Origin: Leucoraja erinacea
Lineage: Eukaryota
Direction of reading: 5' to 3'
DNA length: 64,000 bases
Assembly: GCF_028641065.1 (NCBI RefSeq)
Contig: NC_073387.1
Location: 26,102,001-26,166,000, forward strand
Shown here one piece after another: positions 16,217-53,308 of this stretch (position 1 is its first letter; each line of letters begins with the position of its first letter). Below the pieces are notes generated by a model that did no database searches, had not been told where the DNA came from, and saw only the letters and a program-made list of their open reading frames with translations. The position numbers were made by a program, and so were the translations under genes.

Positions 16217-16764
16217 AACAAACGCGCGCGCACACACACACAGGAACGCGCGCGCGCACACACAAATGCGCACACACACACACACACACAGAAACGCATG
16301 CGTACGCACACAGAAACGCAAACGTGCACACAGAAACACACACAGAGAAACACAGGTGCCGGCAGACACGCACAGGCTGGCAGGCACACACGCACAGGGA
16401 GGCAGGCACACATGCACAGACACAGAGACACATAGGCACAGGGACACACGACACAGACACACACAGACATGCCGACACACACATGCCGACACACACACAT
16501 GGACGACACAGACACAATGACACAGGCGCACACACACAGAAACACACATAGACAGATACAGACACACACACACAGCCACACGCACACACAGACGTGCACA
16601 GAGAGATAGACGGATACGCACGCAGACACGCACAGAGAGAGACAAATAGACATGCATGCAGACACGCACAGAGAGTGACTGACACACGCACGCAGAGAAA
16701 CGCACAGGCATGGAAACACGCACAGACACACACGCACAGGACGAGACTTAATAGTATATATAGA
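15476..16764 (-). mobile_element. Non-autonomous Helitron
   Basis: On the minus strand: 5' TC start, 3' CTAG end, inserted between A and T with no TSD, and a hairpin GGGACCC-aac-GGGTCCC just upstream of the 3' end (15487-15503). Confidence 0.85.
16053..16740. repeat. Degenerate (CA)n/(CAGA)n microsatellite inside the Helitron
   Basis: Directly visible; source of the CV- and HT-rich pseudo-ORFs. Confidence 0.95.
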
Positions 16765-22419: not shown

Positions 22420-22471
22420 ATGGTCGTGATTAGTCGTGTGGATCATTTGGCCGTCATATCTCTTATTTTAG
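22420..22471 (+). CDS. TIM/HAVCR-like leader exon, cassette 1 (L1)
   Basis: ATG...TTAG/GTACGT, 52 nt, phase 1, encoding MVVISRVDHLAVISLIL. Homologous to 36750-36801 and joins in frame to the IgV exon. Confidence 0.8.
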
Positions 22472-22853
22472 GTACGTTACTGAGTTAATAATTTGTTTAT
22501 TATATTTGATCGTGTTATTAAAATTCCTTGGACGGCAGTAAATTAGAGGGGTCCGTGGGATACAGACGAGTTACCGTGTGATGCCGGGTCCCGTTGCAAA
22601 ACTTGCTCTTTCCATGTCCTGGGCATGTAAGTTATCACTCGCTTTTGAGTATAAAGCTAAATGGAGATGAACAATAACGCACGCATCACATTCATGCACA
22701 CAAACCATGATTTGATAATATCCCAAATTTGCCGCCCAGTCAGTAAGGGGGTCACTTTCTTGGTGCTGGGATAGGGTTTCACTTCTGTGGACACTCCCTC
22801 TCTCTTCACTCCAGTCAGAGTCAGTTGTCAGTTTCTTTCCCCGATTGTTTCAG

Positions 22854-23201
22854 GTCGAGTGTCCCTTGCCACCGGATCACAAGTGCGAGGATACCCGGGA
22901 CAGGCGATCACTCTGCCGTGCCACTACTCTGTCCGACAGTATGGTAAAACTGCGATGTGCTGGGGTCGGGGACAATGCCCTACCTTTGACTGTGGAGCTG
23001 TGCTGATTAAAACAAACGGAGAAACAGTAACTTCAGCAGGATCCGAGATATATCAGCTTGGTGGTAAAATTAAGGAAGGGGACGTGTCGCTCACGTTAAA
23101 GCAGCTTCGGAAAGAAGACGGTGGGTGGTATTGCTGCCGTGTGGAGATCCCTGGACTGTTTAATGATGTGAAAGTGAATTTGAATCTTCTGGTTTTGGAC
23201 G
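22854..23201 (+). CDS. TIM/HAVCR-family IgV exon, cassette 1 (V1)
   Basis: 348 nt, phase 1-1, tttcag/...G/GTAAG. TIM six-Cys pattern LPCHY, MCWGRGQCPTFDC, YCCRVEIPGLFND (FG-loop MILIBS-like motif). Confidence 0.92.
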
Positions 23202-23769
23202 GTAAGCAGGCAGCTCAATATTACACATTTCTGTCTCATAAATGCTGTTTCTTGATTACTCGTTGCTACCTTCTAACATCAAGCTCCATGATCAATGTAC
23301 ACGATGCAAAAGACAGCGTAGTCCTGTATTTTATGTAAAGGTAGTACATTGCCTCAGATATTGTGGGAAAGAACATGCTGTATTTTTCGCCAGAGGAAAC
23401 CCCCAGCTGGGGCAACCAGTTTATGTTCCACTTGAGGCTTTCCCAGTCTTTTATCGATCTATTGTTAGTGTAAATCTCTATTCCCGTTCACCTCAAATGT
23501 TTGCGTGTTTCCCCCATAAATACATCTTTATTTATTTCAACCACTCACCGCAGTAGCAAGTGCTACATTTTTTGCTGAATTTGCTGCTGGAAATTTTTTG
23601 TTTGTTGGCTGTCTAAATTGATGGCTTCTAATTATGCATTCTCTCTGTGTCATCCTAACAAAACATCTCATATTAACAACTTCGCTTAGCTTAGCCTTCA
23701 GCCTTATTCCAAAGCCAAAGAGTTTGGTCTCACCATCTTTTTCTTTATTTTATGTTCTTGCATATCTAA

Positions 23770-26554
23770 CATAGCAACATAGAAAATAGGTGCAGGAGTA
23801 GACCATTTGGCCCTTCGAGCCAGCACCTCATTCAATATGATCATGGCTGATCATCCAACATCATTACCCCGTTTCGGCTTTTTCCCCATATCCCTTGATT
23901 TCCTTAGCCCCAGGAGCTAAATCTAACATTTGAAAACATCCAGTGAATTGGCCTCCACTGCCTTCTGTGGCAGAGAACTCCACAGATTCAGAACTGGGTG
24001 AAAAAGTTTTTCCTCATCTCAGTCCTAAATGACCTCCCCTTATTCTTAAATTGTGACCCCTGGTTCTGGACTCCCCAAAATCAGGAACATTTTTCCTGCA
24101 TCTACCCTGTCTAATCCTCTAAAAATTGTATATTTTTCTATAAGATACCCTCTCATCCTTCTAAATTCCAGCGAATACAAGCTGGATCCATTCTTTCATC
24201 ATATGTCAGTCCCGCCATCCCGGGAATTAACCTGGTGAACCTACGTTGCACCCCCTCAATAGCAATAATGTCCATCCTCAAATTAGGGGACCAAAATTCC
24301 ACACAATACTCCAGATACGGTCTCACAAGGGCCCTGTACAACTGTAGGAGGACCTCCTTGCTCCTAAACTCAAATCTTCTTGCAATGAAGGCCCACATGC
24401 CATTGGCTTTCTTCGCTGCCTGCTGTACCTGCATGCTTAGTTTCAGTGACTGATGTACAAGCACACCCAGGTCTCATTGCACCACCCCTTCTCCTAATCT
24501 GACACCATTCATATAATAATCTGCATTCCTGTTCTTGCCACCAAAGTGGATAACATCACATTTATCCACATTATACTGCATCTACCATGCTTCTGCCCAC
24601 TCACCCAACCTATCCAAGTCACCCTGCAGCCTCATAGCATCCTCGCAGCTCACACTGCCGCCCAGCTTTGTGTCATCCGCAAACATAGAGATGTTCCATT
24701 TAATTCCCTTGTCTAAATTGTTAATATATATTGTAACCAACTGGGGTTCCAGCACCAAGCCTTGCGGCACCCAACTATTCGCTGCCTGCCATTCTGAAAA
24801 GGACCCGTTAATTCCCACTCTGCTTCCTGTCTGCCAACCAATTCTCTATCCATGTCAATACCCTATCCCCAATACCATGCGCTCTAATTTTGCACACTAA
24901 TCTCTCGTGTGGGACCTTGTCAAAGGCTTTTTGAATGCCCAGATACACCACATCTACTGGCTCTCCCTTATCCATTATACTTGTTACATATAACCATATA
25001 ACCATATAACAATTACAGCACGGAAACAGGCCATCTCGACCCTTCTAGTCCGTGCCGAACACATAATCTCCCCTTGTCCAATATACCTGCGCTCAGACCA
25101 TAACCCTCCATTCCCTTCCCATCGATATAACTATCCAATTTATTTTTAAATGATAAAAACGAACCTGCCTCCACCACCTTCACTGGAAGCTCATTCCACA
25201 CAGCTACCACTCTCTGAGTAAAGAAGTTCCCCCTCATGTTACCCCTAAACTTCAGTCCCTTAATTCTCATGTCATGTCCCCTTGTTTGAATCTTCCCTAC
25301 TCTCAGTGGGAAAAGCTTTTCCACGTCAACTCTGTCTATCCCTCTCATCATTTTAAAAACCTCTATCAAGTCCCCCCTTAACCTTCTGCGCTCCAAAGAA
25401 TAAAGCCCTAACTTGTTCAACCTTTCTCTGTAACTTAGTTGCTGAAACCCAGGCAACATTCTAGTAAATCTCCTCTGTACTCTCTCTATTTTGTTGACAT
25501 CCTTCCTATAATTAGGTGACCAAAATTGTACACCATACTCCAGAATTGGCCTCACCAATGCCTTGTACAATTTTAACATTACATCCCAACTTCTATACTC
25601 AATGCTCTGATTTATAAAGGCCAGCACACCAAAAGCTTTCTTTACCACCCTATCTACATGAGATTCCACTTTCAGGGAACCGTGCACAGTTATTCCCAGA
25701 TCACTCTGTTCACCTACATTCTTCAATTCCCTACCATTTGCCATGTACGTCCTATTTTGATTTGTCCTGCCAAGATGTAGCACCTCACACTTATCAGCAT
25801 TAAACTCCATCTGCCATCTTTCAGCCCACTCTTCCAACTGGCATAAATCTCTCTGTAGACTTTGAAACTCTACTTCATTACCCGCAACCCCACCTATCTT
25901 AGTATCATCTGCATCCTCAAAAAATTTCAAAAGATTAGTCGTATGATTTCCCCTTCATAAATCCATGCTTTTGTTGACTGATCCCATCACTGCTTTACAA
26001 ATGCACTGCTATAACATCTTTAATAATCGACTCCAGCATCTTCCCCACTACCGATGCAAGGCTAACTGGTCTATAATTCCCCATTTTCTCTCTCCCTCCT
26101 TTCTTAAAAAGTTGAGTTACATTGGCCACCCTCCAGTTCACAGGAACTGATCCAGAGTCAAGAGAACATTGGAAAATGATCACAAATGCAGCTACAATTT
26201 CTGGGGCTGCCTCCTTGAGTACTCTGGGATGCAGACCAGCAGGCCCTGGGAATTTATCTGCCTTCAGTCCCAACAATTTACCTTACACCATTTTGCGACT
26301 AATGTGGATTCCCTTCAGTTCCTTCCCACCACTAGATCCTTGGTCACCTAGATTGTTTGTGTCTTCCTTAGTGAAGACAGAACCAAAGTACTTATTTAGC
26401 CTGTTCTGCCATTTCCTAGTTTCCCAATATAAATTCACCTGTCTCTGACTTTAAGGGACCTACATTCGGCATCACTAGTCTTTTCCTATTTACATAGCTG
26501 TAGAAACTTTTACAGTCAGTTTTTATATTCCCCGCAAGCTGTCTTTCATGCTCT

Positions 26555-26605
<51 letters not shown>

Positions 26606-27370
26606 TTAATGAAACCCTCTGGCCAATTTTTGCCTCTTCCTTGGCTTTAACACTATCCTTGATGTCCTTTGTCAGCCGGGTTGAAGAATTTCATCCAGGC
26701 GGTCTTTAAATCTTTGCCATTGCATCTCCACTGTCAACCCTTCAAGTATGATTTGCCAGTCTATCCTAGCCAATTCCCGTCTCATACCTTCAAAGTCTTC
26801 TTTATTCAAATTCAGTAGCCCAGTCTCTGAATTAACTCTGTCACTCCCCATCCTAATGCAGAATTCCACTATATTATGGTCACTGTTGCCCAAGGGGCCT
26901 TGCACAACAAGATTGCTTAATAATCCTTCCTCATTACACAATACCCAGTCTAGGATGGTCTGCCCTCTATTCGGTTCCTCTACATATTGGTACAAAAACC
27001 ATCATGTATACATTCCAGGAAATCCTCCTCCTCGGCACTGCTACCAATTTGGTTGGCCCAATCTATATGTAGATTAAAATCACCCATGATAACTGCTGTA
27101 CCTTTGCTACACCTACTCTAATTTCCTGTTTGATGCTCTGAATACCACTCCAACAAGCATTTTCTGCCCTTGGCTAGTTTGCAGTTCTACCCATACCGAT
27201 TTTACAGCATCCAAACTAATGTCTCTCCTTGCTATTGCATTAATCTCCTCTTTAACCAGCAATGTCACCCCACCTCCTCTTCCTTTCTGTTTATCCTTCC
27301 AGAATATCGCATACCCCTGCATGTTTAGCTCCCAGCCTTGGTCACCGGGAGCCATGTCTTTGTAATTCCA
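23770..27370 (-). mobile_element. CR1-clade LINE (degenerate ORF2) interrupted by a second CR1
   Basis: Endonuclease, RT (FADDTKL) and C-terminal fragments in collinear order, with a 3' tail at ~23770. Confidence 0.88.
24990..25915 (-). mobile_element. Young 5'-truncated CR1 of a different subfamily, nested
   Basis: Uninterrupted ~300-aa RT C-terminal frame starting ADDTKIGG, with a (TATGGTTA)n tail. The host element resumes on both sides. Confidence 0.88.
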
Positions 27371-27895
27371 TGTAAATCCTCACAACATATCTATGTGCAC
27401 CTTCTACATCCTTTTTATAATGTGCAGTCCAGAACTGGGCAAACTAATCACTAATATCTTCTCACCAAAGCTCAAAGCAGATTTTGCATAACTTCCCCAC
27501 TGTTTGATACTCCCCCTTCATAAATGAACCCTTGGGTTTAACTTGCATTTTCTATTACCTTTGTAAACTGTAGCAAAATCAGCAGTGATCGGTTATTTAT
27601 ACTCCAAGTACTTTTTTTTTACAGCTTAGATTCATATCTGTCAAGTGATAAGTGACCTTCCTATTCTTTCCAATTTGTATGATCTGTTTTGCATTGTTGG
27701 CAAATAATTAACAAATAAAGTCCATTATTACTCATGTGATTTTTTGGAATACTCTTCAGTATTAATGACTATTAATTATAATAAATTACATTCCCAAGTC
27801 TAAATTATAAGTGATAGGAGTAGAATTAGGCCATTCGGCCCATCAATATTCAATCATAGCTGCCCTGTATCTCCCTCACAATCCTATTCTCCTGC

Positions 27896-28473
27896 TGCAC
27901 TTGTCACTTGACCTCCCCCCTCGACTCCATTCAAGGACCCAAGCAGTCGTTCCAGGTGCGACAGAGGTTCACCTGCACCTCCTCTAACCTCATCTATTGC
28001 ATCCGCTGTTCTTGATGTCAGCTGATCTACATCAGTGAGACCAAGCATAGGCTTGGCGATCATTTCGCCGAACACCTCCGCTCGGTCCGCACTAACCAAC
28101 CTGATCTCCCTGTGACTCAGCACTTCAACTCCCCCTCCCATTCTGAATCCGATCTTTCCGTCCTGGGCCTTCTCCATGGCCAGAGTGAGCACCACCGTAA
28201 ATTGAAGGAGCAGCACCTCATATTCCGCTTGGGCAGTTTGCACCCTAGTGGCATGAACATTGATTTTTCCAATTTCCGGTAGCCCTTGCTGTCTCCTCCC
28301 CTTCTCAGCTCTCCCTCAGCCCTCTGGCTCCTCCTCTTCCTTTCTCCTTTCTTCTCCCCCCCCCCCCCTACATCAGTCTGAAGAAGGGTTTTGGCCTGAA
28401 ACGTTGCCTATTTCCTTCGCTCCATAGATGCTGCTGCTGCACCCGCTGAGTTTCTCCAGCATTTTTGTCTACC
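27896..28473 (+). mobile_element. Penelope-like 3' fragment inserted in a CR1 tail
   Basis: GIY-YIG remnant homologous to 3540-3840, flanked by the direct repeat tcctattctcctgc. Confidence 0.8.
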
Positions 28474-28489
28474 TCCTATTCTCCTGCCT

Positions 28490-29790
28490 TCCCCTCAAAA
28501 CTTCTGACACCTGTACTAATCAAGAATCTATCTATCTATGCTGTAAAAATATCCACTAACTTGCCCTCCACAGCCTTCTGTGGCAAAGAATTCCACAGAT
28601 CACCACCCACTGACTAAAGAAATTTCTCCTCATCTCCTTCCTTAAAGAACGTCCTTTAATTCTGAAGCTCTGACCTCTGGTCCTAGACTCTCCCACTAGT
28701 GGAAACATCCTCTCCACATCCACTCTATCCAAGCATTTCACTATTCCGTTTCAATAATGTCCCCCCTCATTCTTCTAAACCCCAGCAAGTACAGGCCCAG
28801 TGCCAACAAACGCTCATCATAGATTTACCTCCTCATTCCGGGGATAATTCTTGTAAACTTCTCTGGACCCTCTCCAGAGCCAGCACATCCTTCTTCAGAT
28901 ATGGTGCCTAAAATTGCTCACAATATTCCAAATGTGGCCTTGCCAGCTCCTTATAGAGCCTGAGCATTACATCTCTTTTTGTATACAAGCCCTCTTGAAA
29001 TAAATGCTAGCATTAAGTTCACTTTCTTTACTACCGATTCGACTTCCAGATTTACTTTTTGGGGATCCTGCACCAGCACTCCCAAGTCCCCTTGCACCTC
29101 CGATTTCTGGATTCTTTCCCCATTTAGAAAATAAATTATGAATATAAATTATAAATTGCAGTATTCGTGCCACTGATCGTGTGGAACCAGCACTCCTTTC
29201 TCTGCTTGAAGTTAGTTGTCTTTTACTAAGCTCATTTTCCAACACAAGTATGTTTCCTTCTTGGGTTGGACTATCCACATACTGTTTCAGGAAACAGTCT
29301 TTGATACACTTAATAAATTCTGCCCAGTCTAAACCTTTAGCACTGAGCAAGTCCTAGTCAATATAGGTGAAGTTAAGCTCACCCACGTAGACAACCCTGA
29401 ATTTTTCAGTAGTCTATCTACAAATGGTTGCTTTATCTCCTGCTGACTATTGGGGGGGGGGGGGCTGATAGTACAATCCCATTAGATTGCTTGCACCTTT
29501 CTTAATGTTGATCTTGACCCTTATCACCTCAGTGGGACTAGCACCTCACCTACACTGCGTTCTCTCAAAGTGCCACTTTGACATTCTCCCTGAACCGTAG
29601 AGCAACTCCGCCACATCTTCCCTCCCACCTTATCGTGTCTGAAACTTTGAAAGTCTGGAACATTGAGCTTCCAGTTATGTCCCTCTTGCAACCAAGTTTC
29701 AGTAATGGCCACAGCATCATAGACCCAGCACCGAACCAGGCTCTAGGTTTATGTGCTTTTTCCATCACACTCTTTGTACCAAAATAAACA
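28490..29790 (-). mobile_element. CR1 fragments (3' end and endonuclease region)
   Basis: GESRTRGQSFRIKG, AITETWLQEG and FLKQYVDSPT motifs. Confidence 0.75.
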
Positions 29791-30394
29791 CATGTTAACC
29801 TATCAGGTTCACTATATTCCTTAACGTCTGCTTTCCTGTAAGACCTAATCCTAATGTCAACCTTCCATCAGTCTTTCCAAATGCTGAACTGCTACTATAG
29901 GTACTGTTTTTTTTCCACCTGCTAATCAGATTTTTTTAGGGGGATGAAAATGTCATTTCTTTGCTGTGAAAATGTACTGCAGTGAAGTACAGGCTCAGCC
30001 CAGTTCCTAGTCCATAAGGCACAGCTGTCCAGCAGTCAGAGCAAAATTTGAATGAATTGACCAATGTTAATTCATCAGATTGCTGGGAGAAGCAGAACCA
30101 AAAATTCACATGAGCTCATCAAAGTGAATCGAATAAGATCTAATGCTAAGAAAATAAGAAAACTCGGTGCAACAGGATGTTCCCCTGGTTTTTGGTTTTA
30201 TTTCCTTTCTGTTCTTGAGCGGATTGTCAAAATAATGTTAGTTCTGAGGACAGGCATCCACCACAATACAAAAGGAAGTGGGTGATTCATCTCCTCTCCC
30301 TTAGTTCTTGGAAGATACATTTCAAAACTACCATCCATTCCAACTAGCAAAAGAACATAAACTCAAAAATAATGGAAGTGGAGTTCATAAAACA

Positions 30395-30705
30395 GAGTGA
30401 GTCCCACCGCAAATTGGAGGAGTAGCACCTCATATTTCGCTTGGGTAGTTTACACCCCAGCGGTATGAACATTGACCTCCAATTTCAGGTAGTCCTTGCT
30501 TTCTCCCTCTTTCCCCTCCCCTTCCCAGCTCTCCCACAGCCTACTGTCTCCGCCTCTTCCTTGCTTCCTCTCGCCCCCCCCCCCCCCCCCCCCCCCAGCC
30601 CCAGCCCCATCAGTCTGAAGAAGGGTCACAACCCGAAACGTCACCTATTCCTTCGCTCCACAGATGCTGCTTCACCAGCTAAATTTCTCCAGCACTTATG
30701 TCTAA
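30395..30705 (+). mobile_element. Penelope-like 3' fragment
   Basis: Encodes a RKLEE-HLIFRLGSLHPSGMN terminus, followed by the same 3' repeat as 28190-28470. Confidence 0.75.
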
Positions 30706-30881
30706 ACATTGAATTGACCACCTGTACAGGGACAGAGATGTCAGGAGTTGCAATTAGTGTTAAAGCTGTGCCAGGTACAGAGTGCAGAGGTCTCATTAGA
30801 GCACGGCAATCCGTAGTATTTAAAATTCTTCTTGAAGTTTTAAGTATAATCTAGTGTCATATTATTTATTGTGTTGTACTT

Positions 30882-31152
30882 AACATAGAAACATAGAAAA
30901 TAGGTGCAGGAGGAGGCCATTCGGCCCTTCGAGCCAGCACCACCATTCATTGTGATCATATCAATAACCCGTGCCTGCCTTCTCCCCATATCCCTTGACT
31001 CCACTAGCCCCAAGAGCTCTATCTAACTCTCTCTTAAATCCATCCAGTGACTTGGCCTCCACTGCCCTCTGTGGCAGGGAATTCCATAAATTCACGACTC
31101 TCTGGGTGAAAACGTTTTTTCTCACCTCAGTCTTAAATGAAATCCCCTTTAT

Positions 31153-31191
<39 letters not shown>

Positions 31192-31475
31192 TTTTATTAG
31201 AAGTACGGTAAATTACAATCCTACACAACACATATATCTTAATACATTTTTTGTACCGCTTCATTTTTTTTGAGCTTTAAGAAAAAGGTAGAAGTAAGGA
31301 AAGTAAAGAAAGTGCAAGAGAGTCGTGAAGTGTAAGAGTGTTGGGAAAAGAAAGCCCCTTAGGAAAGAAGTTAGAGAAGGAAGTAAAGTGAGAAAATAGA
31401 CCCTAGAAAAAAAGAAAGAAAGAGAAAATAGAAACAATCGCTCTATTATAACAGACCTCCCCTTTATTCTAAGAC
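30882..31475 (-). mobile_element. CR1 3' end with a nested L1 3' fragment
   Basis: Poly(T) tract at ~31155-31190 plus L1 3' UTR (homologous to ~56830-57090), flanked by TSD cccctttattct. Confidence 0.8.
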
Positions 31476-32639
31476 GTACATATTCTTTGTGGCATTTGGT
31501 TGGATTTTAACAACATTTCCAGAGTTCTGTGTTGTGCTGCTCCACATGCCTGAATGAGTTTTCCAACCCAGATGGATTCTGGCTGAACTCTGAGGATGGG
31601 TGTAGGGAACCTACTTCTCCATCAGGTCGATGATGCCAACATGATACGACAGCTGGTGTAACGTTGCTTTCATGTTGACACTGTGACAGCTCTGTTACAG
31701 AATTGTCAGTGTGATCTTGTTACTCTTTAATTGTTGCTTTGACTTTGCTACAGGGACCATGGTCTTGTCGCATGGTCACCCTACCAGTGTTACATCACAT
31801 GTGTAGGAAGGTGCTGCAGATGCTGGTTTAAACCGAAGATAGACACAAAAAGCTGGAGTAACTTGTCTGAAGAAGGGTCTTGACTCGAAACGTCACCCAT
31901 TCCTTCTCTCCAGAGATGTTCTCTGTCCTGCTGAGTTATTCCAGCTTTTTGTGTCTATCTACCACTGTTACATTGCTGCTCTCACTGTGTGAGGAGTTAG
32001 CTGTTGCTATTCCTATGTCACCTTCCAGATCACCACCCAGTGCAGTGTGCAAATGAAAACCCAGCATCACTCTGCTGCTGATTTAGAAGTTTTATTTTTG
32101 TTGACATGATGTGGAGAAAGTGTTGCCAACTGTGAATGAATCCTGGTGATATTTCCTGAAACTCCTCCTCATCTCCCTTTGCTTCTCTGTATTGAGATCC
32201 CCGTGATCATCCCCACATCACATTTCCCAGCTTGACAAGTTGTTTTGCATCAAAGGAAACTGAATGGCTCTCAAAACCAAATCCATTGCTTTCTTCTGCA
32301 GTCTCTTTGGACTCCTTCAACTTATTGTCGTGGATCATTTTCTTCTCCCAATCCTCACACTTTTGATTACTTCCCCAATTTCTCACTCACCTCACACCAC
32401 TTTTTCCTCACACCTATCTGCCGTTCATCTCCCAATCTCTTGACACATACTCAATGCCCCAACCTATGAAAACAAGCATATCATATGCCTTCTTTACCAC
32501 TCTACCCACATGTATTACCATTTCTAGTGTCATGGTTATAACAGCAGCCTGGGGTAAACCAGTTTTGGAGCTCGCATTATTCCAGTTTAGAGACTCATGT
32601 GTTGTGCAGGGTGTGCAGAATGAAACCGTTAGTGCAGCC

Positions 32640-33140
32640 TGGAGTGATAATAGAAACTGACGGGGATGTGGACTTACCATTGGAGCCAATCCCTTGCCTC
32701 GATCGTTGCTCCAACTGCGGTTTTCACTATCGAGGAGCTCGCAGTCTCGGGTAGAGAACGATGTCAGGAGCTCCAAACGACGTAGAAGGTTTCGACCAGC
32801 CCCAACCCAGGGTCAGATTGCCCAGCGCGGGGGAGCTGAGATTCTCCCCTGATGCAGGAGCTTGTTCACCCCGACGCGGAGGGCCGGCTATGGGAGCCAA
32901 GATTGTCCCCGAAGGGTCGAGGCCCCCAACCGTGGGAGAACAAAGAAGGAAAAGAGATTTAACTTTTTTCCTCCTTCCAACACAGTGAGGAATGTGGAGG
33001 AGTCACAGTGGTGGATGTTTATGTTAAATTTATGTTAAAATGTATTTTGTGTGTTCTGTTGCTTTTTATTGGTATGACTGTATGGCAAATGAAATTCCTC
33101 ATATGTTGCAAAACATACTTGGCTAATAAAGTATGATTAT
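32640..33140 (+). mobile_element. Unclassified non-LTR 3' fragment
   Basis: GC-rich body ending in aataaagtatgattatg. Similar motifs occur in reverse at ~13660-13990 and ~47570-48400. Confidence 0.4.
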
Positions 33141-33505
33141 GAAAATGCTAGAAATATTATCTCAGTCTCCCGGTGACAGACATAAAATGCCCGGAAACTC
33201 TCGCTTTCTCCCCATTTCATCGCCTACTCTTCACAAATAAATCATTGAAAAGTGGCACTAAATCCCAGGACTCAGGTGGAACAGCGACCCAGCCAGTCCG
33301 GCACTTGGCAACATTTCCACTCTTCCTGCTGCTACTGCACAGGACAGACACGAGATCTGCTCGGTGCATTTTGTCACCAGTGATCTGAAGATCTAAACTG
33401 ACAGCAACGGTGAAGGAGGTTGTAATTTATGCGCGTTGGATATTGATGTAACGCCAAAGCAGGAGCCAAGTGGCTGATATGATTTGCCTCAATTCATAAT
33501 ACTGT

Positions 33506-36500
33506 GAAACATAGAAACATAGAAACATAGAAATTAGGTGCAGGAGTAGGCCATTCGGCCCTTCGAGCCAGCACCGCCATTCAATATGATCATGGCTGAT
33601 CATCCAACTCAGTATCCCGTACCTGCTTTCTCTCCATACCCCCTGATCCCCTTAGCCACAAGGGCCACATCTAACTCCCTCTTAAATATAGCCAATGAAC
33701 TGGCCTCAACTACCCTCTGTGGCAGAGAGTTCCAGAGATTCACCACTCTCTGCGTGAAAAAAAAGTTCTTCTCATCTCGGTTTTAAAGGATTTCCCCTTT
33801 ATCCTTAAGCTGTGACCCCTTGTCCTGGACTTCCCTAACATCGGGAACAATCTTCCTGCATCTAGCCTGTCCAACCCCTTAAGAATTTTGTAAGTTTCTA
33901 TAAGATCCCCTCTCAATCTTCTAAATTCTAGAGAGTATAAACCAAGTCTATCCAGTCTTTCTTCATAAGACAGTCCTGACATCCCAGGAATCAGTCTGGT
34001 GAACCGTCTCTGCACTCCCTCTATGGCAATAATGTCCTTCCTCAGATTTGGAGACCAAAACTGTACGCAATACTCCAGGTGTGGTCTCACCAAGACCCTG
34101 TACAACTGCAGTAGAACCTCTCTGCTCCTATACTCAAATCCTTTTGCAATGAAAGCTAACATACCATTCGCTTTCTTTACTGCCTGCTGCACCTGCATGC
34201 CTACCTTCAATGACTGGTGTACCATGACACCCAGGTCTCGCTGCATCTCCCCCTTTCCCAATCGGCCACCATTTAGATAATAGTCTGCCCTCCTGTTTTT
34301 GCCACCAAAATGGATAACCTCACATTTATCCACATTATACTGCATCTGCCAAACATTTGCCCACTCACCCAGGCTATCCAAGTCACCCTGCAGTCTCCTA
34401 GCATCCTCCTCACAGCTAACACTGCCCCCCAGCTTAGTGTCATCCGCAAACTTGGAGATATTGCCTTCAATTCCCTCATCCAGATCATTAATATATATTG
34501 TAAATAGCTGGGGTCCCAGTACTGAGCCTTGGGGTACCCCACTAGTCACTGCCTGCCATTGTGAAAAGGACCCGTTTACTCCTACTCTTTGCTCCCTGTT
34601 TGCCAGCCAGTTCTCTATCCACATCAATACTGAACCCCCAATGCCTTGTGCTTTAAGTTTGTATACTAATTTCTTATGTGGGACCTTGTCGAAAGCCTTC
34701 TGGAAGTCCAGATACACCACATCCACTGGTTCTCCCCTATCCACGCTACTAGTTACATCCTCGAAAAATTCTATAAGATTCGTCAGACATGATTTACCTT
34801 TCGTAAATCCATGCTGACTTTGTCCAATGATTTCACCACTTTCCAAATGTGCTGCTATCCCATCTTTAATAACTGACTCTAGCAGTTTCCCCACTACCGA
34901 TGTTAGACTAACTGGTCTGTAATTCCCCATTTTCTCTCTCCCTCCCTTCTTAAAAAGTGGGGTTACGTTTGCTACCCGCCAATCTTCAGGAACTACTCCA
35001 GAATCTAAAGAGTTTTGAAAGATTATTACTAATGCATCCATTATTTCTGGAGCTACTTCCTTAAGTACTCTGGGATGCAGCCTATCTGGCCCTGGGGATT
35101 TATCGGCCTTTAATCCATTCAATTTACCCAACACCACTTCCCGGCTAACCTGGATTTCACTCAATTCCTCCAACTCCTTTGACCCGCGGTCCCCTGCTAT
35201 TTCCGGCAAATTATTTATGTCTTCCTTAGTGAAGACGGAACCAAAGTAGTTATTCAATTGGTCCGCCATATCCTTGTTCCCCATGATCAACTCCCCTGTT
35301 TCTGACTGCAAGGGACCTACATTTGTTTTAACTAATCTCTTTCTTTTCACATATCTATAAAAACTTTTGCAGTCAGTTTTTATGTTCCCTGCCAGTTTTC
35401 TTTCATAATCTATTTTTCCTTTCCTAATTAAGCCCTTTGTCCTCCTCTGCTGGTCTTTGAATTTCTCCCAGTCCTCCGGTATGCTGCTTTTTCTGGCTAA
35501 TTTGTACGCATCATCCTTCGCTTTGATACTATCCCTGATTTCCCTTGTTATCCATGGATGTACTACCTTCCCTGATTTATTCTTTTGCCAAACTGGGATG
35601 AACAATTTTTGTAGTTCATCCATGCAGTCTTTAAATGTCTTCCATTGCATATCCACCGTCAACCCTTTTAGAATTAATTGCCAGTCAATCTTGGCCAATT
35701 CACGTCTCATACCCTCAAAGTTACCTTTCTTTAAGTTCAGAACCATTGTTTCTGAATTAACAATGTCACTCTCCATCCTAATGAAGAACTCAACCATATT
35801 ATGGTCACTCTTGCCCAAGGGGGCACGTACAACAAGATTGCTAACTAACCCTTCCTCATTACTCAATACCCAGTCTAAAATAGCCTGCTCTCTCGTTGGT
35901 TCCTCGACATGTTGATTTAGATAACTATCCCGCATACATTCCAAGAAATCCTCTTCCTCAGCACCCCTGCCAATTTGATTCACCCAATCTATATGTAGAT
36001 TGAAGTCACCCATTATAACCGTTTTGCCCTTTGTCGCACGCATTTCTAATTTCCTGTTTGATACCATCTCCAACTTCACTACTACTGTTAGGTGGCCTGT
36101 ACACAACACCCACCAGCGTTTTCTGCCCCTTAGTGTTTTGCAGCTCTACCCATACCGATTCCACATCCTCCAAACTAATGTCCTTCCTTTCCATTGCATT
36201 AATCCCCTCTCTAATCAGTAACGCTACCCCACCTCCTTTTCCTTTCTGTCTATCCCTCCTGAATATTGAATATCCCTGGATGTTCAGCTCCCAGCCTTGG
36301 TCACCCTGGAGCCATGTCTCCGTGATCCCAACTATATCATAGTCATTAATAGCTATCTGCACATTCAACTCATCCACCTTATTACGAATGCTCCTTGCAT
36401 TGAGACACAAAGCCTTCAGGCTTGTTTTTACAACACTCTTACCCCTTACACAATTATGTTGAAAAGTGGCCCTTTTTGATTTTTGCCCTGGTTTTGTCTG

Positions 36501-36560
36501 CCTGCCACTTTTACTTTTCACCTTGCTACCTATTTCTTCTACCCTCATTTTACACCCTTC
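33506..36560 (-). mobile_element. Young CR1-clade LINE with near-complete ORF2 (APE endonuclease + RT)
   Basis: ORFs 36006-36548 (LNARSIRNK, GITETWL) and 33740-36109 (MGDFN, SDH, GVPQGSVLGP, FADD) are joined by one frameshift near 36030. 3' (CTATGTTT)n tail. Confidence 0.95.
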
Positions 36561-36749
36561 GTGTCCACGTCAAGTAGGAAACAACTCGTAGCCACAGGAC
36601 AGGATGTGCCCCAGCGACAGCTCAGAGAGCGGCCGTGACAGTGCCTTCGAGTCTGAAGAAGGGGCCCGTCCCGGAACGTCACCTATTCCTTCTCTCCAGA
36701 GATGCTGCCTGGCCCGCTGTGTTACTCCAGCACCACAGTGTCCAGCGCG

Positions 36750-36801
36750 ATGGTTGTTACTGGCGGTGTGGCTCATTTGATCGTAGTATCTTTTTTTTTA
36801 G
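36750..36801 (+). CDS. TIM/HAVCR-like leader exon, cassette 2 (L2)
   Basis: 52 nt, MVVTGGVAHLIVVSFFL, TTAG/GTACGT donor, phase 1. Confidence 0.82.
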
Positions 36802-37581
36802 GTACGTTTCCGGTTCAGGAATTGAATTAGTTTGTCAAATCGTGTTATTCAAACTCCCTGGAATGCAGTAGGTGAGATGTGTCTGTGTGTGTGTGTAACT
36901 GAGGAGGTGCAGCCGAGTCACCGAGTGATGCCGGGTCTGATCGTGAGGACGGGCTGGAGTTGAGAAGGTCGAGGGGTGAACTAACGGGATCATTGGGGTT
37001 GAAGTCCAGGTGGGCGCTGATCTGACGGCATAGAGGATATTCGACTACGAATCTGTTCCACTGGTTTTGGCAGTTCAATGGGTTTGTTAACGGACAAATA
37101 GACCAAAGGCTGGAGCTGTGGTCCGAATTGTTTGTCCCGGTTCTACCCGTATCCGGGGAGTTTGGAATCTAATGAAATAAAATGTGAACAAAATGTCAAG
37201 AGAGGAAAATATTTGTCTCCCAGGAGTCATTCAGGGATTACAATGTGTGTCGATCCCTGTCCCATATGTCCCCGTGTCTGTCTCTGAAATTGCTTCACAA
37301 GCCGACAAGCTGAGTCAAAGCTGCTACAGAAATGCAGCGATTGGAGACGGCCGCTCGCCACCAGTTACCCTGGGATAAAGGGGTGGAGGTGGGGGGTAAA
37401 TACTGGATCTGCCTGCAATACACACATCCCGATAAATATAAACCCTTTCACAATACTCCCAATTGCCGCTAACGGTAACGGGCTCATTTTCTCAGCGCTG
37501 GGACCGGGTTGTCACAATGTGGCCACTCCCTTCCTCATCACTCAGCGCCGGCTATAACTGTCTTTTCCCGGACTGTTTCAG

Positions 37582-37929
37582 GTCGAGTGTCCCTTGCCAC
37601 CGGATCAGAAGTGCGAGGATACCCGGGACAGGCGATCACTCTGCCGTGCCACTACTCTGTCCAAATGCATGGTAAAACTGCGATGTGCTGGAGTCGGGGA
37701 AAATGCCCTGCCTCGGGCTGTGGATCTGAACTGATTAAAACAAACGGAGAAACTGTAACTTCAGCAGTATCCGAGAAATATCAGCTTGATGGTAACATTG
37801 AGCAAGGAGACGTGTCGCTCACGATAAAGCAGCTCCGGAAAGAAGACGGCGGCTGGTATTGCTGCCGTGTGAGGAGGCCTGGACCGTTTAATGATGTGAA
37901 AGTGAATTTGAATGTGCTGGTTTTGGATG
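37582..37929 (+). CDS. TIM/HAVCR-family IgV exon, cassette 2 (V2)
   Basis: 348 nt, phase 1-1; MCWSRGKCPASGC, YCCRVRRPGPFND. About 90% nt identity to V1 by manual alignment. Confidence 0.92.
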
Positions 37930-38277
37930 GTAAGCAGCTCAATATTACACGTTTCTGTCTCATTCCTGGCGTCGCAACGATGTTGCTGTTAACAGAGTTT
38001 CCTCACAGCTGTAGTGACCCAGGTTCGATCCTAACCTTCAGTGCCACCTGCGTGGAGTTCGCAGGTTCTCCACCAGTTTCCCCTCGTGTTCTGGTTTTCT
38101 CCCAGGTTCGAAGATGCGAGTGGGTTAAACTGCCTCTTGTGTAGAATAGTGGGGCGCAGATCGACAGGTTCCTGGGATATACGTACTGGATGGATTGCTG
38201 CGAATGTTTGAACAGGTGGCATGGTCTTGTTGGGCTGAATGGCCCTCTTCTGCCCCCTTAGGGAAATATCAAAACAC

Positions 38278-38954
38278 CATATTATTGTTTCTAGATTAAT
38301 TGTTAACTCTAATTAACATAGTTAAGCAAAGGGTGAAGTCGCCGCTGTAAAATGTCCCTAATGTGCAGGGCGGGGATGAGAAAATAGCATAACGTAGATT
38401 TGATATGAATTAGTGCTAGATGGTCGGCGTGGACTCTGTGGGACTAAGGGCCTGATTCCATGCTGTAACTTTCAATCAATCAATCAATTAAAAAATCAGT
38501 TGAATATCTAGCACTATGAATGAAGTGCAGGTGAAAATAGCAGGCGGGTAGAATGTAATATGGACAACGAGTCCATTGACAGAGATATTGTGAGGAGGAA
38601 CGTTTAATGTTTTACATCAGCTATATAATACAGAAACATTGGGTGTTTCCCATTCTGGCGTTTATAGCCATGTCTTTAAACTACAAGAAACATGAGCAGA
38701 GTAGGAAGGAACTGTAGATGCTGGTTTACACCGAAGATAGACACAAAATGCTGGAGTAACTCAGCGGGACAGGCAGCATCTCTGGATGACGTTTCGGTTC
38801 GAGACCCTTCTTTAGACCGAGGGACAGGGGAGAGGTCAGAGAAGGAATAGTAAGTGAAATAGGAGCAGACTTGGTGGAGTCTGTCATCTCCCCGTAACAT
38901 TAAACACCTTAATTACTAATTAGAGTTAACAATGAATCTAGAAACAATAATATG
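38278..38954. mobile_element. ~40-bp inverted-repeat-bounded element with internal SINE pieces
   Basis: catattattgtttctagatt(a/c)attgttaactctaatta at ~38278 and in reverse ending ~38954. No clear TSD. Confidence 0.55.
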
Positions 38955-38984
38955 TTATTGCATGTCAATCTCCACTTTAAAAAT

Positions 38985-39075
38985 ACCCAAAGACTTGGCT
39001 AGTTTTGTTGCCATGTGGAGATCTTTGGACTGTTTCAAGACGTGAAAGTGAATTTGGACCGTAGGCAGCTCAATG
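38985..39075 (+). pseudogene. Decayed third TIM IgV exon remnant (3' end)
   Basis: tgttgccatgtggagatctttggactgtttcaagacgtgaaagtgaatttggac...gcagctcaat aligns to the V1 3' end and intron start (CCHVEIFGLFQDVKVNL), with an internal deletion and a damaged donor. Confidence 0.75.
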
Positions 39076-39532
39076 TCCTTCTACTTGCTGAATACAGATG
39101 CAAAGTTAGCATTTAGTGCCTCGCAAATACATCCTCTGACTCTTTGGACAACTTCTAGTCCCGTCATCACACACAGTTCCACTTCCAGTGCTTCCCCGAG
39201 ATCAACCAGCTGCACTGTCCCGGCAGACCCATTGCACCCACCACCTTCAGGCTTCCAATCCAAAATAAAATGCTTACTCCAACCCTGTTTTGCCTTTATT
39301 AACGAGTGCACATCAGTAACTCCAATCCAATGGATTATTATGCTTTTTAAATGTGGAAACATCAAAGGCCCTATGAATGTCCAGAAACACCACATCCACT
39401 GGTTCTATATTCTACTCAGTGGGTTAGCTGTGTGTGAGCTGAATGATGCAGTATGTGGCAAAGCAGTGCGTGAGAAAGAATATGTCTTCACTCGCACACG
39501 AGCACAATAAATTATTATTTCTTCTGTTCTAG

Positions 39533-39616
39533 AGATCACCACACCGAATCCTTCAACCACAAATGAGTCTGTCCATGCACAGGATGCAAACTCTGTCAGA
39601 GCTTCTACATTTGAAG
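39533..39616 (+). CDS. TIM-like mucin/stalk exon 1
   Basis: ttctag acceptor, G/GTCAGA donor, 84 nt, phase 1-1. Encodes EITTPNPSTTNESVHAQDANSVRASTFE (S/T/P-rich, one N-glycan sequon). Confidence 0.75.
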
Positions 39617-40180
39617 GTCAGACTAAAAGTTCAAACTATGATGTCTTCTAATGTCTGTTGCAATGTATTTTTATATCCATATTTCCATGATTTGACTGCT
39701 TAAAGTTGACAAGGATACCTTGAAATTGCTACTAATACAAAACGTTTAATGTTTAAAACAACTTGAAATATCATGGATTTAAATTGAGTATTGCAAATAT
39801 TGCAAAATGTAGTCGGGAAATATTTGTGATTAAAGTGAATGGGACATACATTTTATCAAGTACCTTCAACACTGTCAGGAGATTCCAAGGTATTGAACAA
39901 CAAATGGAAGGCCAGCTTCTACAGCAGTGCCTCCACACCTCAATTTTTTTTTTCCTTGAATAGAATCCCAAAATTCCTGGAATTTGATGTTATTTCCTGA
40001 AATTTTCAAAAATGTTTCCTGCATGCTATTTGTTGGGTTTTTTTCACACGTTAACAACAAGGCAAATCATATCTATGTAACTACATTGTATTTGCCTGCT
40101 TCTGTTACTCACTTGTACAAGACAGCTTTCATTGCCTCCAACAGCTTTCGTTGTCTTTGTTTTTTCAACCAGCCCTCCTG

Positions 40181-40535
40181 NNNNNNNNNNNNNNNNNNNN
40201 NNNNNNNNNNNNNNNNNNNNNNNNNNNNNNNNNNNNNNNNNNNNNNNNNNNNNNNNNNNNNNNNNNNNNNNNNNNNNNNNNNNNNNNNNNNNNNNNNNNN
40301 NNNNNNNNNNNNNNNNNNNNNNNNNNNNNNNNNNNNNNNNNNNNNNNNNNNNNNNNNNNNNNNNNNNNNNNNNNNNNNNNNNNNNNNNNNNNNNNNNNNN
40401 NNNNNNNNNNNNNNNNNNNNNNNNNNNNNNNNNNNNNNNNNNNNNNNNNNNNNNNNNNNNNNNNNNNNNNNNNNNNNNNNNNNNNNNNNNNNNNNNNNNN
40501 NNNNNNNNNNNNNNNNNNNNNNNNNNNNNNNNNNN
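40181..40535. other. Assembly gap (355 N)
   Basis: Run of N. Confidence 1.
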
Positions 40536-50009: not shown

Positions 50010-50520
50010 TTTGTTTTTTTAATTATTAAAAAAATATATATATTAGAAGCAAATGTACAAGAGTAGAACCAACGGCAAGTAAAATTATACAGTTATTGTA
50101 CAGCTGCAATTTTAACTTTTTAGCTTTGAATTAGAAGAAAGGAAAGGAGAAAAAGCAAGAAAGAGAAAATGTGAGATGTGCAAAGATAGGACCCCTAGAC
50201 TACCAAAGTAGTGTAGCCAAAGAGTGAATAAAAGAAAGAAAGAAGAGAGAAAGAGAAAAAAATAAAAGGACGAAAGAGAAAGAGAAAGAAAAGTGGTGAT
50301 ATACCTGCCTCTCACCCCTCCCCACCCACCTCCCCCAACCCATAATTAGATTTAAATCCAAAGTTGTGTTGCGCCATACTATCCTTGTAAGAAATCAATG
50401 AATGGTGTCCATGTCTTGGAAAAATGATCTGTTTTTTCTGCCAAGACAAGTCTAATATTTTCAAGATGTAGTGTCTCGGATATGTTTATAATCCACCTTA
50501 AGAGTAGGGACTGATGTATG
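50010..50520 (-). mobile_element. L1-clade 3' fragment
   Basis: Similar to the L1 3' end at 56814-57340 (tattagaag..., purine-rich tract, ORF2 terminus). Confidence 0.6.
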
Positions 50521-50698
50521 TTTCCAAAATCTCAGAAATAATGTCTGTTTTGCCTTATGTGGAAAATTAATGTTAGAATGAATCTTGGAAAATAGTGATG
50601 TTTTGGATCCAAGACCTTCTATACCTTACCTTGTTTTTAGGCACCATAGCGGATTCCTTGCTAGTGATATCAGCCGGAATTGTATTCTTTTTCCTCAG

Positions 50699-50760
50699 GT
50701 ACCCGAGAAATTCTGAGCTCTACAATAACTACGAATGAAATCAACAGTACTTCCGAACAA
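50699..50760 (+). CDS. TIM-like mucin/stalk exon 2
   Basis: tcctcag acceptor, CAA/GTAAGC donor, 62 nt, phase 1-0. Encodes GTREILSSTITTNEINSTSEQ. Confidence 0.8.
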
Positions 50761-50797
50761 GTAAGCATATATAAAAGGTTCAAACTACATAAAATCT

Positions 50798-50989
50798 AAG
50801 GTACACAAAAATGCTGGAGAAACACAGCGGGTGCAGCAGCATTTATGGAGCGAAGGAAATAAGGCAACGTTTCGGCCCGAAACCTTTCTTCAGACTGAAG
50901 AAGGGTTTCGGCCCGAAACGTTGCCTATTTCCTTCGCTCCATAGATGCTGCTGCACCCGCTGAGTTTCTCCAGCATTTTTGTGTACCTT
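50798..50989. repeat. ~190-bp near-perfect palindrome of two inverted Penelope-derived 3' repeats
   Basis: Arms aaggtacacaaaaatgctggag... / ...ctccagcatttttgtgtacctt. Flanking direct repeat tacataaaatctaa at 50786-50799 and 51022-51035. Confidence 0.85.
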
Positions 50990-51103
50990 TGATTTTCCAG
51001 CATCTGCAGTTCCTTCTTAAATACATAAAATCTAAAGTATATCTAGAACATCGAACACTTTTATGCAGGTGTTTTAATGGATGCTGCAATAAATCAGTCT
51101 CTA

Positions 51104-51466
51104 TGCAACGACCCAGTTATACCGACACCAAACGTCGTGAATAAACGGTTTCTTCATACAGGCATTATAGGCAGATATACATACACGTTGGTCCTCTAAC
51201 ATAAAAGTAATTGTTGCTGCTGCAAGGCTGTTGCCTCGTGGGCTTGAGTTGAACTCTTGCTGAGGTGGCAGGACACTCACCCGAAGAGGGAAGAGAGCTG
51301 GTCAGCTCGTAGTGAGAGAGAGGGTTGACCCGGGGTTCGTTATAAATACTAGGACACACCGCTATACCCCGTGACAACTACTCCCTGCCATTGCCCAGTC
51401 ACGTGACCCTACCCCCGACTGCTGAGGGTTCGTGTAGCTCGTGGCCCAACCACCAGGTGTCGCCAC
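51104..51466 (-). mobile_element. Possible solo LTR
   Basis: The minus strand begins TGTGGCGACACCTGGTGG, ends ...TTGCA and has an internal TATTTATAA. No TSD seen. Confidence 0.3.
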
Positions 51467-52249
51467 ACAGTATCAGTTTTCAATTTTTCTAATTATTCAT
51501 TGGCTTACAGACTTAGTGGCAAAATTCCACAGAAGGGAATGTAGAGCTGCATTTTGAAATGTCTGAAAAAATTAATTATAAATCTGTATGGATATAAATA
51601 CATTTTCATGTAATATGCATTTTATTTTTATGTAATAATCTAAATTGTGGCAATTTATTGAAAGCCTCCTAAAATTACAAGTATGTTTGATCACCTGGTT
51701 TGTTCTTGTCAATTTCTGTTATTAAACTATCCAGAATCCATGGAATTTTGGAGATGGAAAAACACTCCTAGAGTTTAGAAGAATGAGGGGTGACATTGAA
51801 ACATAGAGAATAATAAATTCTTCAATAGAGTGGATGTGGAGACAATGTTTCCACGAGTGGGAGAGTCTAGGACTAGAGGTCATAGCCACAGAATTAAAGA
51901 ACTTCTTTTGGGAAGGAGATGAGGAGACATTTATTTTGTCAAAGGCTGGTGAATCTGTGGAATTCTTTGCCACAGAAGGCTGGGGAGGCCGAGTTAGCGG
52001 ATATTTTTAAGGCAGAGATAGAAACATTTTTGATTAGTACAGGTGTTAGAAGTTATGGGGAGTAGGCAGGAGAATAGGGTTTGGAGGGCGATCTATGATT
52101 CAATCATGATTGATTGGCGGAGTAGACTTGATGGGCCGAATGGCCTTATGACCTTTTGCCCTTATAATGGTCAATGGTTGCAGTACGTGCATTTTAGATT
52201 TAAAATAGTGAAGAAAATCTTGTTCTCTGATTTTGTGTATCTATTTCAG

Positions 52250-52358
52250 GTTCCCGATGACCTGGTAAACATCCTGGTTTCTTATCTTGCCTGGGCAGCC
52301 CGTGTCTTAGTTTTCATCTGCTTTCTTGCAATCACTCTGCTCCTTTTTCAATGGAAAT
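52250..52358 (+). CDS. TIM-like transmembrane exon (Arg in TM)
   Basis: tttcag acceptor, T/GTAAGT donor, phase 0-1. Encodes VPDDLVNILVSYLAWAARVLVFICFLAITLLLFQWK. Confidence 0.88.
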
Positions 52359-53273
52359 GTAAGTGTCACTGTCTGGGAACCTGCTTTTTACTCAAAACAA
52401 TTTGTTGCGATATTTGTGCAAGTTCTTGTTAACATGGAACATACAGTATGACCCTGAGTTTGAGTTGATGCAGGGGAGAAGAATGAATGGTAGGTAAACC
52501 AGAAAATACATTTTAAGAATTAAAATGTACTTTAATACACATGTGAAGAAATAGGAAAGATGTAACCAAATAGATGGGGATTTCAAGGCATCCATACGGC
52601 CAGAGCTATATTGGCCAAGTCCCCTGCCTTTGATGGTGGAGATGAGGAATGGCAGCACATGAGTGGGAGAGTTAAAAGAATGGGAGACTAATGCTAGGAG
52701 GCAGACTCGAGAATGATGCAGGGTTACAATAGGGAGAGGTCATGGATGGGGTGCAGAAATGATTTTAAAGACATGGAGAACAGATATCTAATATCTAATA
52801 GAGGATATCTAATAGAGGTTGGCAATTTAACGAAGCAAGATAAATTGGGGAGAAGGATGTGATATTGGATTAAATGTGGGAAGGAACTATTTCTAAGTGA
52901 AAGTTTATGTAATCTTAGCAATTGTAAGACCCCGCACGAATGTTTTCAAGGTGTTAAAGTAAATTAATGGATATTGAAATTGATATTTTCTAATGAATTG
53001 GGAGAATAGGGTTATATGGCATTGCTAAAACTGAAACTGGATCTTTCAGAATAGAATATAGGAATTACTTCCACACGGAAAGTCTGATAGCAGTTCAGAA
53101 TTTTCAGGTATTAATATTGAATTTATGAAGTTTCTGTTACTCAAAAATCCAAATCAATATTGGGAACATTTTATGCTTCAGGTTAATATATAATTTTGGT
53201 GAAGCATACTTGAAAGATCATTAATATTTTGAAACAATCGAAGATCGTTAAAATTTTTGTTTCTGATTCATAG

Positions 53274-53308
53274 GTAAACAAACAGAAAATGAACATCTTT
53301 CATCGTAG
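53274..53308 (+). CDS. TIM-like terminal cytoplasmic exon
   Basis: tttgtttctgattcatag acceptor, phase 1, gives CKQTENEHLSS*. AATAAA at 53587 and 53595, possibly within a repeat tail. Confidence 0.65.

Follow-up and report, generated by a model that had tools for sequence, protein, structure and literature searches.

Tandem copies of a leader and IgV module at a TIM-family locus of the skate Leucoraja erinacea

Can one TIM receptor gene hold more than one version of its ligand-binding domain, and is an intact extra copy lying far upstream a working part of that gene or a relic of it? The question is raised by a locus of the skate Leucoraja erinacea on contig NC_073387.1 (NCBI RefSeq assembly GCF_028641065.1); the 64,000 nucleotides (nt) analysed, positions 26,102,001 to 26,166,000 of the forward strand, are called the window here, and coordinates count from its first letter. 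Two cassettes, each a leader exon followed by an exon for a TIM-type immunoglobulin variable (IgV) domain, precede a single set of exons for a stalk, a transmembrane (TM) segment and a cytoplasmic tail. TIM receptors detect dying cells by their phosphatidylserine, and many enveloped viruses make use of them; to our knowledge, the diversification of their binding domain outside mammals has been little studied. Cassette 2 is part of an annotated gene, and cassette 1 is a new, intact and unannotated module 14 kb upstream of that RefSeq gene. On balance we lean towards one TIM-4/TIM-1-like gene with a tandem-copied 5′ module, in which transcripts begun at the promoter of cassette 1 would encode a receptor with two IgV domains in tandem.

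Exons of the locus and the annotated gene

The exons of the locus, with the V-exon remnant and the assembly gap that lie among them, are as follows (a slash marks the boundary between exon and intron; aa, amino acids).

22420-22471, + strand: L1, leader exon of cassette 1; ATG, 52 nt, phase-1 donor TAG/gtacgt
22854-23201, + strand: V1, TIM-type IgV exon; 348 nt, phase 1 to 1, acceptor tttcag/G, donor ACG/gtaagc
36750-36801, + strand: L2, leader exon of cassette 2; 52 nt, donor TAG/gtacgt; the RefSeq coding sequence starts at 36702
37582-37929, + strand: V2, IgV exon in RefSeq isoforms X1 and X2; 348 nt, phase 1 to 1, acceptor tttcag/G, donor G/gtaagc
38990-39074, + strand: psiV3, dead remnant of a V exon (3′ part and donor region); 15-nt deletion and stops
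39533-39616, + strand: S1, first stalk exon; 84 nt, included in X1, absent from X2
40181-40535, no strand: assembly gap of 355 N, intronic, between S1 and S2
50699-50760, + strand: S2, second stalk exon; 62 nt
52250-52358, + strand: TM exon; 109 nt, a hydrophobic span with an arginine
53274-53308, + strand: terminal exon a; 35 nt including the stop, tail KQTENEHLSS, used in X1
53432-53532, + strand: terminal exon b; tail of 32-33 aa (CSNFTFVNKNSMDCKRDSIYWLLPHSKGIALVN), used in X2

Both cassettes are intact, with leader and V exons of 52 and 348 nt and phase-1 donors; their coordinates, sizes and splice sites are as a preliminary description of the stretch had given them. Cassette 2 and the shared exons together make up the RefSeq "TIMD4-like" isoform X1, save for a 16-residue N-terminal extension in the RefSeq model, which begins (start ATG 36702) in an insert resembling a short interspersed nuclear element (SINE). 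Isoform X2 (XP_055498903.1, P0016, 239 aa) is identical to what these exons give when S1 is left out and 53432-53532 comes last. Both annotated isoforms join V2 to stalk, TM segment and one or other of two alternative tails, and AATAAA signals follow terminal exon b at 53587 and 53595. The preliminary description had listed four downstream exons, all of them correct, and had missed the terminal exon at 53432-53532 as well as psiV3, the SINE-like insert of cassette 2 and the existing RefSeq annotation of that cassette. The layout that it reported is real, and somewhat richer than first described, with three generations of V exon and two tails.

In-script translation agrees with the reading frames proposed earlier. 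Either cassette joined to the exons at 39533, 50699, 52250 and 53274 gives 690 nt and a single-IgV protein of 229 aa; splicing of V1 to V2 and on to the same downstream exons gives 1038 nt and a tandem protein of 345 aa; and unspliced continuation past the V1 donor meets a stop codon at 23336-23338, where a read-through stop had been placed at 23338.

A single set of downstream exons had been claimed, and tblastn of the 64-kb window with the locus's own exons (E up to 10) and with 20 cartilaginous-fish TIM proteins found no second stalk, TM or tail exon. Stalk or TM exons belonging to V1 itself, named in the preliminary description as the finding that would count against sharing, were sought in 23.2-36.7 kb with both sets of queries, the fish proteins including canonical tyrosine-tail forms from rays, skates and sharks, and none was found there. 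A hydrophobic-window scan of the spacer between the cassettes returned low-complexity matches, matches antisense to long interspersed nuclear elements (LINEs) and a 19-codon open stretch (23557-23613) without homology. The homology searches were made exon by exon or with database proteins rather than with joined spliced models. In this assembly, cassette 1 is an old, incomplete duplicate without stalk or TM exons of its own. A decayed copy of S1 located 3′ of V1 was also considered and rejected, as the local alignment was not significant (z = 1.7).

From the S1 donor to the assembly gap there are 565 nt, and from the gap to the S2 acceptor 10.2 kb; the gap touches no exon. It separates all V cassettes and S1 from S2, the TM exon and the tails, and the linkage of the two sides rests on the scaffold and on gene models. 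Because the passage from S1 to S2 is read directly in X1 and in the Amblyraja radiata protein P0159 (...STFEGTREILSS...), a hidden coding exon in the gap is not expected; an optional one is possible.

TIM character and nearest known systems

The V1 and V2 exons match the Pfam V-set family (scores 7e-14 and 8e-17, respectively), and V1 aligns with the IgV crystal chains of mouse TIM-4 and TIM-1 (E = 2e-31) at six of six cysteines and at the N-D of the FG loop. V2 carries the same six cysteines, that is, the canonical pair and the four that are specific to TIM; judged by sequence, V1 and V2 are genuine TIM-type IgV domains. The aligned N-D is that of the WFND motif in the metal-ion-dependent site for phosphatidylserine, and the skate site is a putative one; the hydrophobic tip of the loop is L-F in V1 and P-F in V2, compared with W-F in mammalian TIM proteins.

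The rest of the receptor also has the form expected of a TIM protein, a stalk rich in serine and threonine (S/T) followed by a single TM segment and a cytoplasmic tail. The stalk is 49 aa long, short for a TIM protein, with 18 S/T residues and two N-glycosylation sequons; the TM exon passes a hydrophobicity test and has homologues in ray and shark proteins by tblastn. The exon-a tail (X1) is without tyrosine. The exon-b tail (X2) has one (DSIYWLL), which is not conserved in Hypanus and Mobula; by eye this tail resembles those of Hypanus and Mobula closely enough to suggest homology, a match that tblastn did not find. An arginine in the TM segment (AARVLVF) is kept in ray and shark relatives (CWTARASVF, LAFRVSVL). 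In Mobula hypostoma, near-identical IgV domains are found on a body with an arginine-containing TM segment and a short tail (P0161) and on one with a conventional TM segment and an EENIYQI tail (P0162), a pair that resembles an activating and an inhibitory receptor.

With mammalian TIMD4 and HAVCR1 the skate locus shares the IgV fold signature, the six cysteines, the FG-loop N-D, the S/T-rich stalk and the single TM segment. The mammalian genes have one IgV exon each and a much longer mucin, whereas the skate protein has its 49-aa stalk, an arginine in the TM segment, tails of 11 or 32-33 aa, and LFND or PFND in place of WFND. One IgV domain per TIM gene, as the preliminary description gave it for mammals, holds for these but not for the chicken TIM4 isoforms, for models from rays and gar, or for a four-IgV form from the bullfrog.

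In clustered protocadherins and UGT1A, the variable units are single exons that have a donor and lack an acceptor, an arrangement that leads to the choice of one unit among many. The analogy once drawn between these genes and the skate locus reaches as far as several upstream variable units in the same orientation followed by one constant exon set. It fails at the defining feature: the skate unit has two exons, and V1 and V2 have strong polypyrimidine-AG acceptors, so that V2 would be included by default.

The skate locus comes nearest instead to TIM genes whose IgV exons are duplicated, a kind known from chicken TIM4 and from models of rays and frogs. In chicken, isoforms with one and two IgV domains (chTIM4, chTIM4L0/L1/L2 and chTIM4S), proven by complementary DNA (cDNA), come from duplicated IgV exons (Hu et al. 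2016, PMC4913284). Chicken and skate have in common one TIM gene with duplicated IgV exons upstream of one mucin, TM segment and tail; in the skate there are at least two IgV exons of the same phase upstream of one stalk, TM and tail set, a shared transcription unit being assumed. Chicken TIM4 differs in its single leader exon, in the linker between its two IgV domains and in its cDNA-proven isoforms; the skate copy has its own leader and ATG, a second promoter is possible, and the V exons would abut.

The closest tandem-IgV relatives are RefSeq models from rays, namely Hypanus sabinus XP_059846115/6 ("pIgR-like", 327 aa) and Mobula birostris P0216 (407 aa, named "hepatitis A virus cellular receptor 2 homolog"); tandem-IgV TIM models occur also in gar. 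The junction between the two V domains in the ray forms (...VLD/GRV...) is the same as that predicted for V1 to V2 (...LLVLD/GRVSLATG...). The Hypanus model has the same arginine-containing TM segment and tail family as the skate, whereas P0216 has a conventional TM segment and a tail with a tyrosine motif; the ray tandem forms differ, too, in being computational models. A bullfrog protein (ACO52028.1 / XP_073478067.1, "pIgR-like") is TIM-like with four IgV domains in 464 aa, on an assembled contig of 1585 nt. Such anuran proteins are alike in having TIM-type IgV domains in tandem, with CWGRGxC and YCCRVxxPGxFND motifs, transcribed as one; they differ in having four domains and no TM segment and in being secreted. 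We found no literature on the TIM genes of cartilaginous fish.

History and upkeep of the repeated module

The homologous stretch of the two cassettes takes in about 30 nt of 5′ untranslated region (UTR; 22385-22419 compared with 36616-36646) at one end and reaches some 190 nt beyond the V donor at the other, where it is found in 23275-23393 and 38503-38620 (z = 7.3); transposable elements (TEs) bound it. A third copy, psiV3, survives between V2 and S1 as the last third of a V exon and its donor region, with the GT kept at the old donor position; it is 85.9% identical to V1 and 78.2% identical to V2. The 5′ module of leader and IgV exons has been copied repeatedly in tandem, and of the copies V1 and V2 are intact and psiV3 is dead. 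V2 reaches S1, and therefore already splices across a dead V exon.

V1 and V2 differ at 34 of 348 nt, with 22 amino-acid-changing codons and 6 synonymous ones (synonymous divergence, dS, 0.108; nonsynonymous divergence, dN, 0.104; dN/dS 0.96). Positive selection on the pair was considered and set aside, since with this ratio and a Fisher p of 1 no such claim is possible. L1 and L2 differ at 13 of 52 nt, with no insertion or deletion (indel). The alignable flanks are 25% diverged, with 15 gap events in 428 nt, compared with none in the 400 nt of exon; the probability of zero indels is about 0.001 for a V1 lineage drifting neutrally since the duplication and, by our estimate, about 0.05-0.1 if gene conversion followed later. 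All three splice sites of cassette 1 are intact.

The tree of V domains places the skates in one clade (97/98), within which V1 is sister to V2 and both Amblyraja copies (93/92), and the shortest path from the skate node leads to V1 (0.063, compared with 0.175 for V2). The FG loop of V1 is the widespread, ancestral VEIPGLFND; those of V2 (VRRPGPFND) and of Amblyraja (VQF[ST]GPFNDG) are derived. A SINE-encoded extension (MLPGPLCYSSTTV.SA) is common to cassette 2 and Amblyraja P0159 and is absent from the V1-like Amblyraja protein P0160; because it is shared in this way, the cassettes appear to have been distinct, and the SINE insert present, before Leucoraja and Amblyraja split. We infer from these comparisons that the duplication predates that split and that V1 has been kept intact by selection, by gene conversion or by both. 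The intactness, the tree and the loop argue against free decay of V1; they are not proof of its expression.

The spacer between the cassettes and the region immediately 5′ of L2 contain the following elements.

23768-36548, − strand: LINE-rich spacer; fragments with EEP and reverse transcriptase (RT) domains, and a near full-length copy
33516-36548, − strand: near full-length retrotransposon of the type without long terminal repeats (non-LTR); uninterrupted 789-aa RT open reading frame (ORF2) at 33743-36109, 180-aa endonuclease ORF at 36009-36548
36616-36646, + strand: remnant of the cassette-2 5′ UTR; homologous to 22385-22419, 81% identity over 27 nt
36650-36735, + strand: SINE-like repeat in the cassette-2 5′ UTR; supplies the RefSeq ATG (36702) and a polypyrimidine-AG acceptor (36698-36699)

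The EEP/RT fragments occupy the minus strand of 23.96-29.72 kb, and 61% of the spacer sequence is found again in other parts of the window. The preliminary description had taken the spacer to be almost all retroelement; it is indeed largely LINE and holds no homologue of a stalk or TM exon, but about 3.5 kb of it (29.7-30.4, 31.45-31.8 and 31.96-33.5 kb) is unclassified. The 5′ end of the antisense LINE abuts the cassette-2 UTR remnant, and the SINE-like repeat ends 14 nt 5′ of the L2 ATG. Because these two elements sit there, the sequence that originally preceded cassette 2 has been displaced, and the start site of the cassette may be TE-derived. The SINE-derived AG at 36698-36699 would in addition define 36700-36801 as an open exon of 102 nt, phase 1 to 1.

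Other repeats lie in the intron between V2 and S1 (37964-38050, 38352-38560, 38670-38990 and 39306-39411), one of them with a tRNA-like head (GGTTCGATCC); all of these draw RNA reads from elsewhere in the genome. Further upstream in the window, a frame of 387 aa on the plus strand (617-1780) is open, rich in K, E and S and without a Pfam family, and may be a large exon belonging to a gene further upstream. A GC-rich tandem repeat at 13830-14510 is open on both strands, with units resembling ELGQRPRSWG; a long GT/CA-rich microsatellite block follows at 15900-16800. Weak Ig-like tblastn matches at 13713-13763 are probably due to chance.

Possible products of cassette 1

In the reading towards which we lean, L1 would splice to V1 if promoter 1 fires. 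V1 would then splice to V2 by default, because V2, at 348 nt a multiple of three, is flanked by a strong acceptor and a strong donor. The product would be a two-IgV receptor of 345 aa on the chassis with arginine in its TM segment, and promoter 2 would give the one-IgV form; a further possible route would use the SINE-derived acceptor, with 36700-36801 as an internal exon. By analogy with the long and short forms of chicken TIM4, the outcome would be variation in IgV number through alternative promoters, and not an exclusive choice of the protocadherin kind. That V1 is in fact spliced, in one way or another, to the downstream exons is possible, if doubtful, and the tandem form would be more likely than one with V1 only.

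Several observations weigh against this reading. Protein searches covered 1.84 billion representative proteins, with name look-ups and a word-indexed search, and no L. erinacea protein with V1 was found in the collections searched (lengths 131-418 and 63-201 aa); the search at 131-418 aa would catch a 229-aa V1 isoform or the 345-aa tandem. The skate models are one-IgV (V2) forms only, and RefSeq has modelled tandem forms in rays and none in L. erinacea. RNA from four runs of four studies (X6, X9, X13 and X16) was mapped to 36550-39700 at 80% likeness, a level meant to let reads from V1 be placed on V2 as well. In all four, depth was zero over L2, V2 and S1, a result that is blank for the whole gene and silent on V1; the gene is not expressed in these four sampled runs. 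Run X16 had about one read pair, below threshold, with a depth pattern that fits a single read spliced from V to S1, and the SINE-like repeat (36650-36735) carried pile-ups thousands deep in every run. The intron of about 14.4 kb that a tandem transcript would have to cross is full of antisense LINEs and may not be traversed efficiently. The V1/V2 dN/dS of about 0.96 fits neutrality as well as it fits diversification of the loops, and the exon dS of 0.108, compared with about 0.3 in the flanks, suggests gene conversion, which could keep a dead exon looking healthy. Finally, Amblyraja P0160 is modelled with its own copy of S1 (two residues differ from that of P0159), ends by read-through after this stalk exon, and has no TM segment and no hydrophobic leader or proper signal peptide; on this model, the V1-like copy of Amblyraja looks like a decaying, truncated duplicate gene.

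Much of this evidence bears also on the explanation that cassette 1 is a relic, a non-functional truncated tandem duplicate with no product that looks intact through recent gene conversion; we consider this a real possibility without being persuaded of it. An incomplete duplicate had been named from the start as the simpler alternative, and the truncated V1-like model of Amblyraja, which lacks a signal peptide, favours it, as do the lack of a protein model with V1 in the collections searched, the dN/dS near 1, and the roughly threefold lower dS of the exons relative to the divergence of the flanks, which indicates conversion; psiV3, moreover, shows that V copies die at this locus. V1 is, however, the slowest-evolving and most ancestral-like copy in the skate clade. 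Its leader, which has not been converted (25% diverged), still has its ATG, an open frame, the original length and its splice donor, and no V1-like donor for conversion is present in this window. Even with conversion, intactness such as this is improbable by the estimate given above.

A secreted protein is the next possibility, and an unlikely one. L1 and V1 with a read-through tail of 45 aa, ending at the stop at 23338, could make a soluble decoy that binds ligand; the ORF is present, RefSeq models orphan cassettes in the same way in Hypanus (P0151, 140 aa) and in Amblyraja (P0160), and frogs secrete TIM-like proteins with several IgV domains. Such a product would not need the consensus donor that V1 has kept, there is no plus-strand AATAAA or ATTAAA within 2.2 kb past that donor, the read-through tail has no homologue, and the collections contain no such protein.

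The variable-constant design proposed in the preliminary description, in which choice of promoter or splice site mounts V1 or V2, but never both, on the single stalk, TM and tail chassis, is in our judgement improbable. Joining either cassette is in frame, the splicing of V2 over psiV3 to S1 is a precedent within the locus for an upstream cassette reaching the shared exons, and the differences between V1 and V2 are mostly amino-acid-changing. But the V exons carry acceptors, and nothing, therefore, enforces the skipping of V2; double inclusion is in frame, which removes any filter by nonsense-mediated decay; and compatibility at phase 1 is generic to exons of the Ig superfamily. The collections hold no protein model with V1, and the RNA runs are blank for the gene. 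We give as little credence to a wider form of the idea, in which the cassettes are alternative units driven by their own promoters and V1 is used either exclusively or in a V1-V2 tandem on the adaptor-coupled chassis with arginine in its TM segment. Such units would present the ancestral VEIPGLFND pocket of V1 or the derived VRRPGPFND pocket of V2 on one chassis, as a germline variable-on-constant design whose V modules are renewed by birth and death, psiV3 being the previous one.

Least probable is a fault of assembly, with cassette 1 artefactual or with 3′ or shared exons misplaced or hidden in the gap: the 355-N gap separates L1, V1, L2, V2 and S1 from S2, the TM exon and the tail, part of the spacer (about 3.5 kb) is unclassified and the second S1 copy of Amblyraja is missing here, but the divergence of the cassettes (10% for the V exon, 25-33% for leader and introns) is much greater than haplotypes would show, on which ground we reject cassette 1 as an artefact or haplotig, and X1 and P0159 read S1 to S2 directly, X1, X2 and P0159 cross the gapped intron, and a gap downstream of cassette 2 cannot hold exons private to cassette 1.

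The locus presents three generations of one module, of which one is dead, another in use and another spare; it is the spare that keeps the ancestral pocket, and the copy in use that has changed it. The practical value of the locus at present is a point of annotation, an intact IgV cassette 14 kb upstream of a RefSeq gene. If V1 is expressed, skates would vary the number of IgV domains, or the type of pocket, on one receptor body, and the pattern known from chicken TIM4 would extend to cartilaginous fish.

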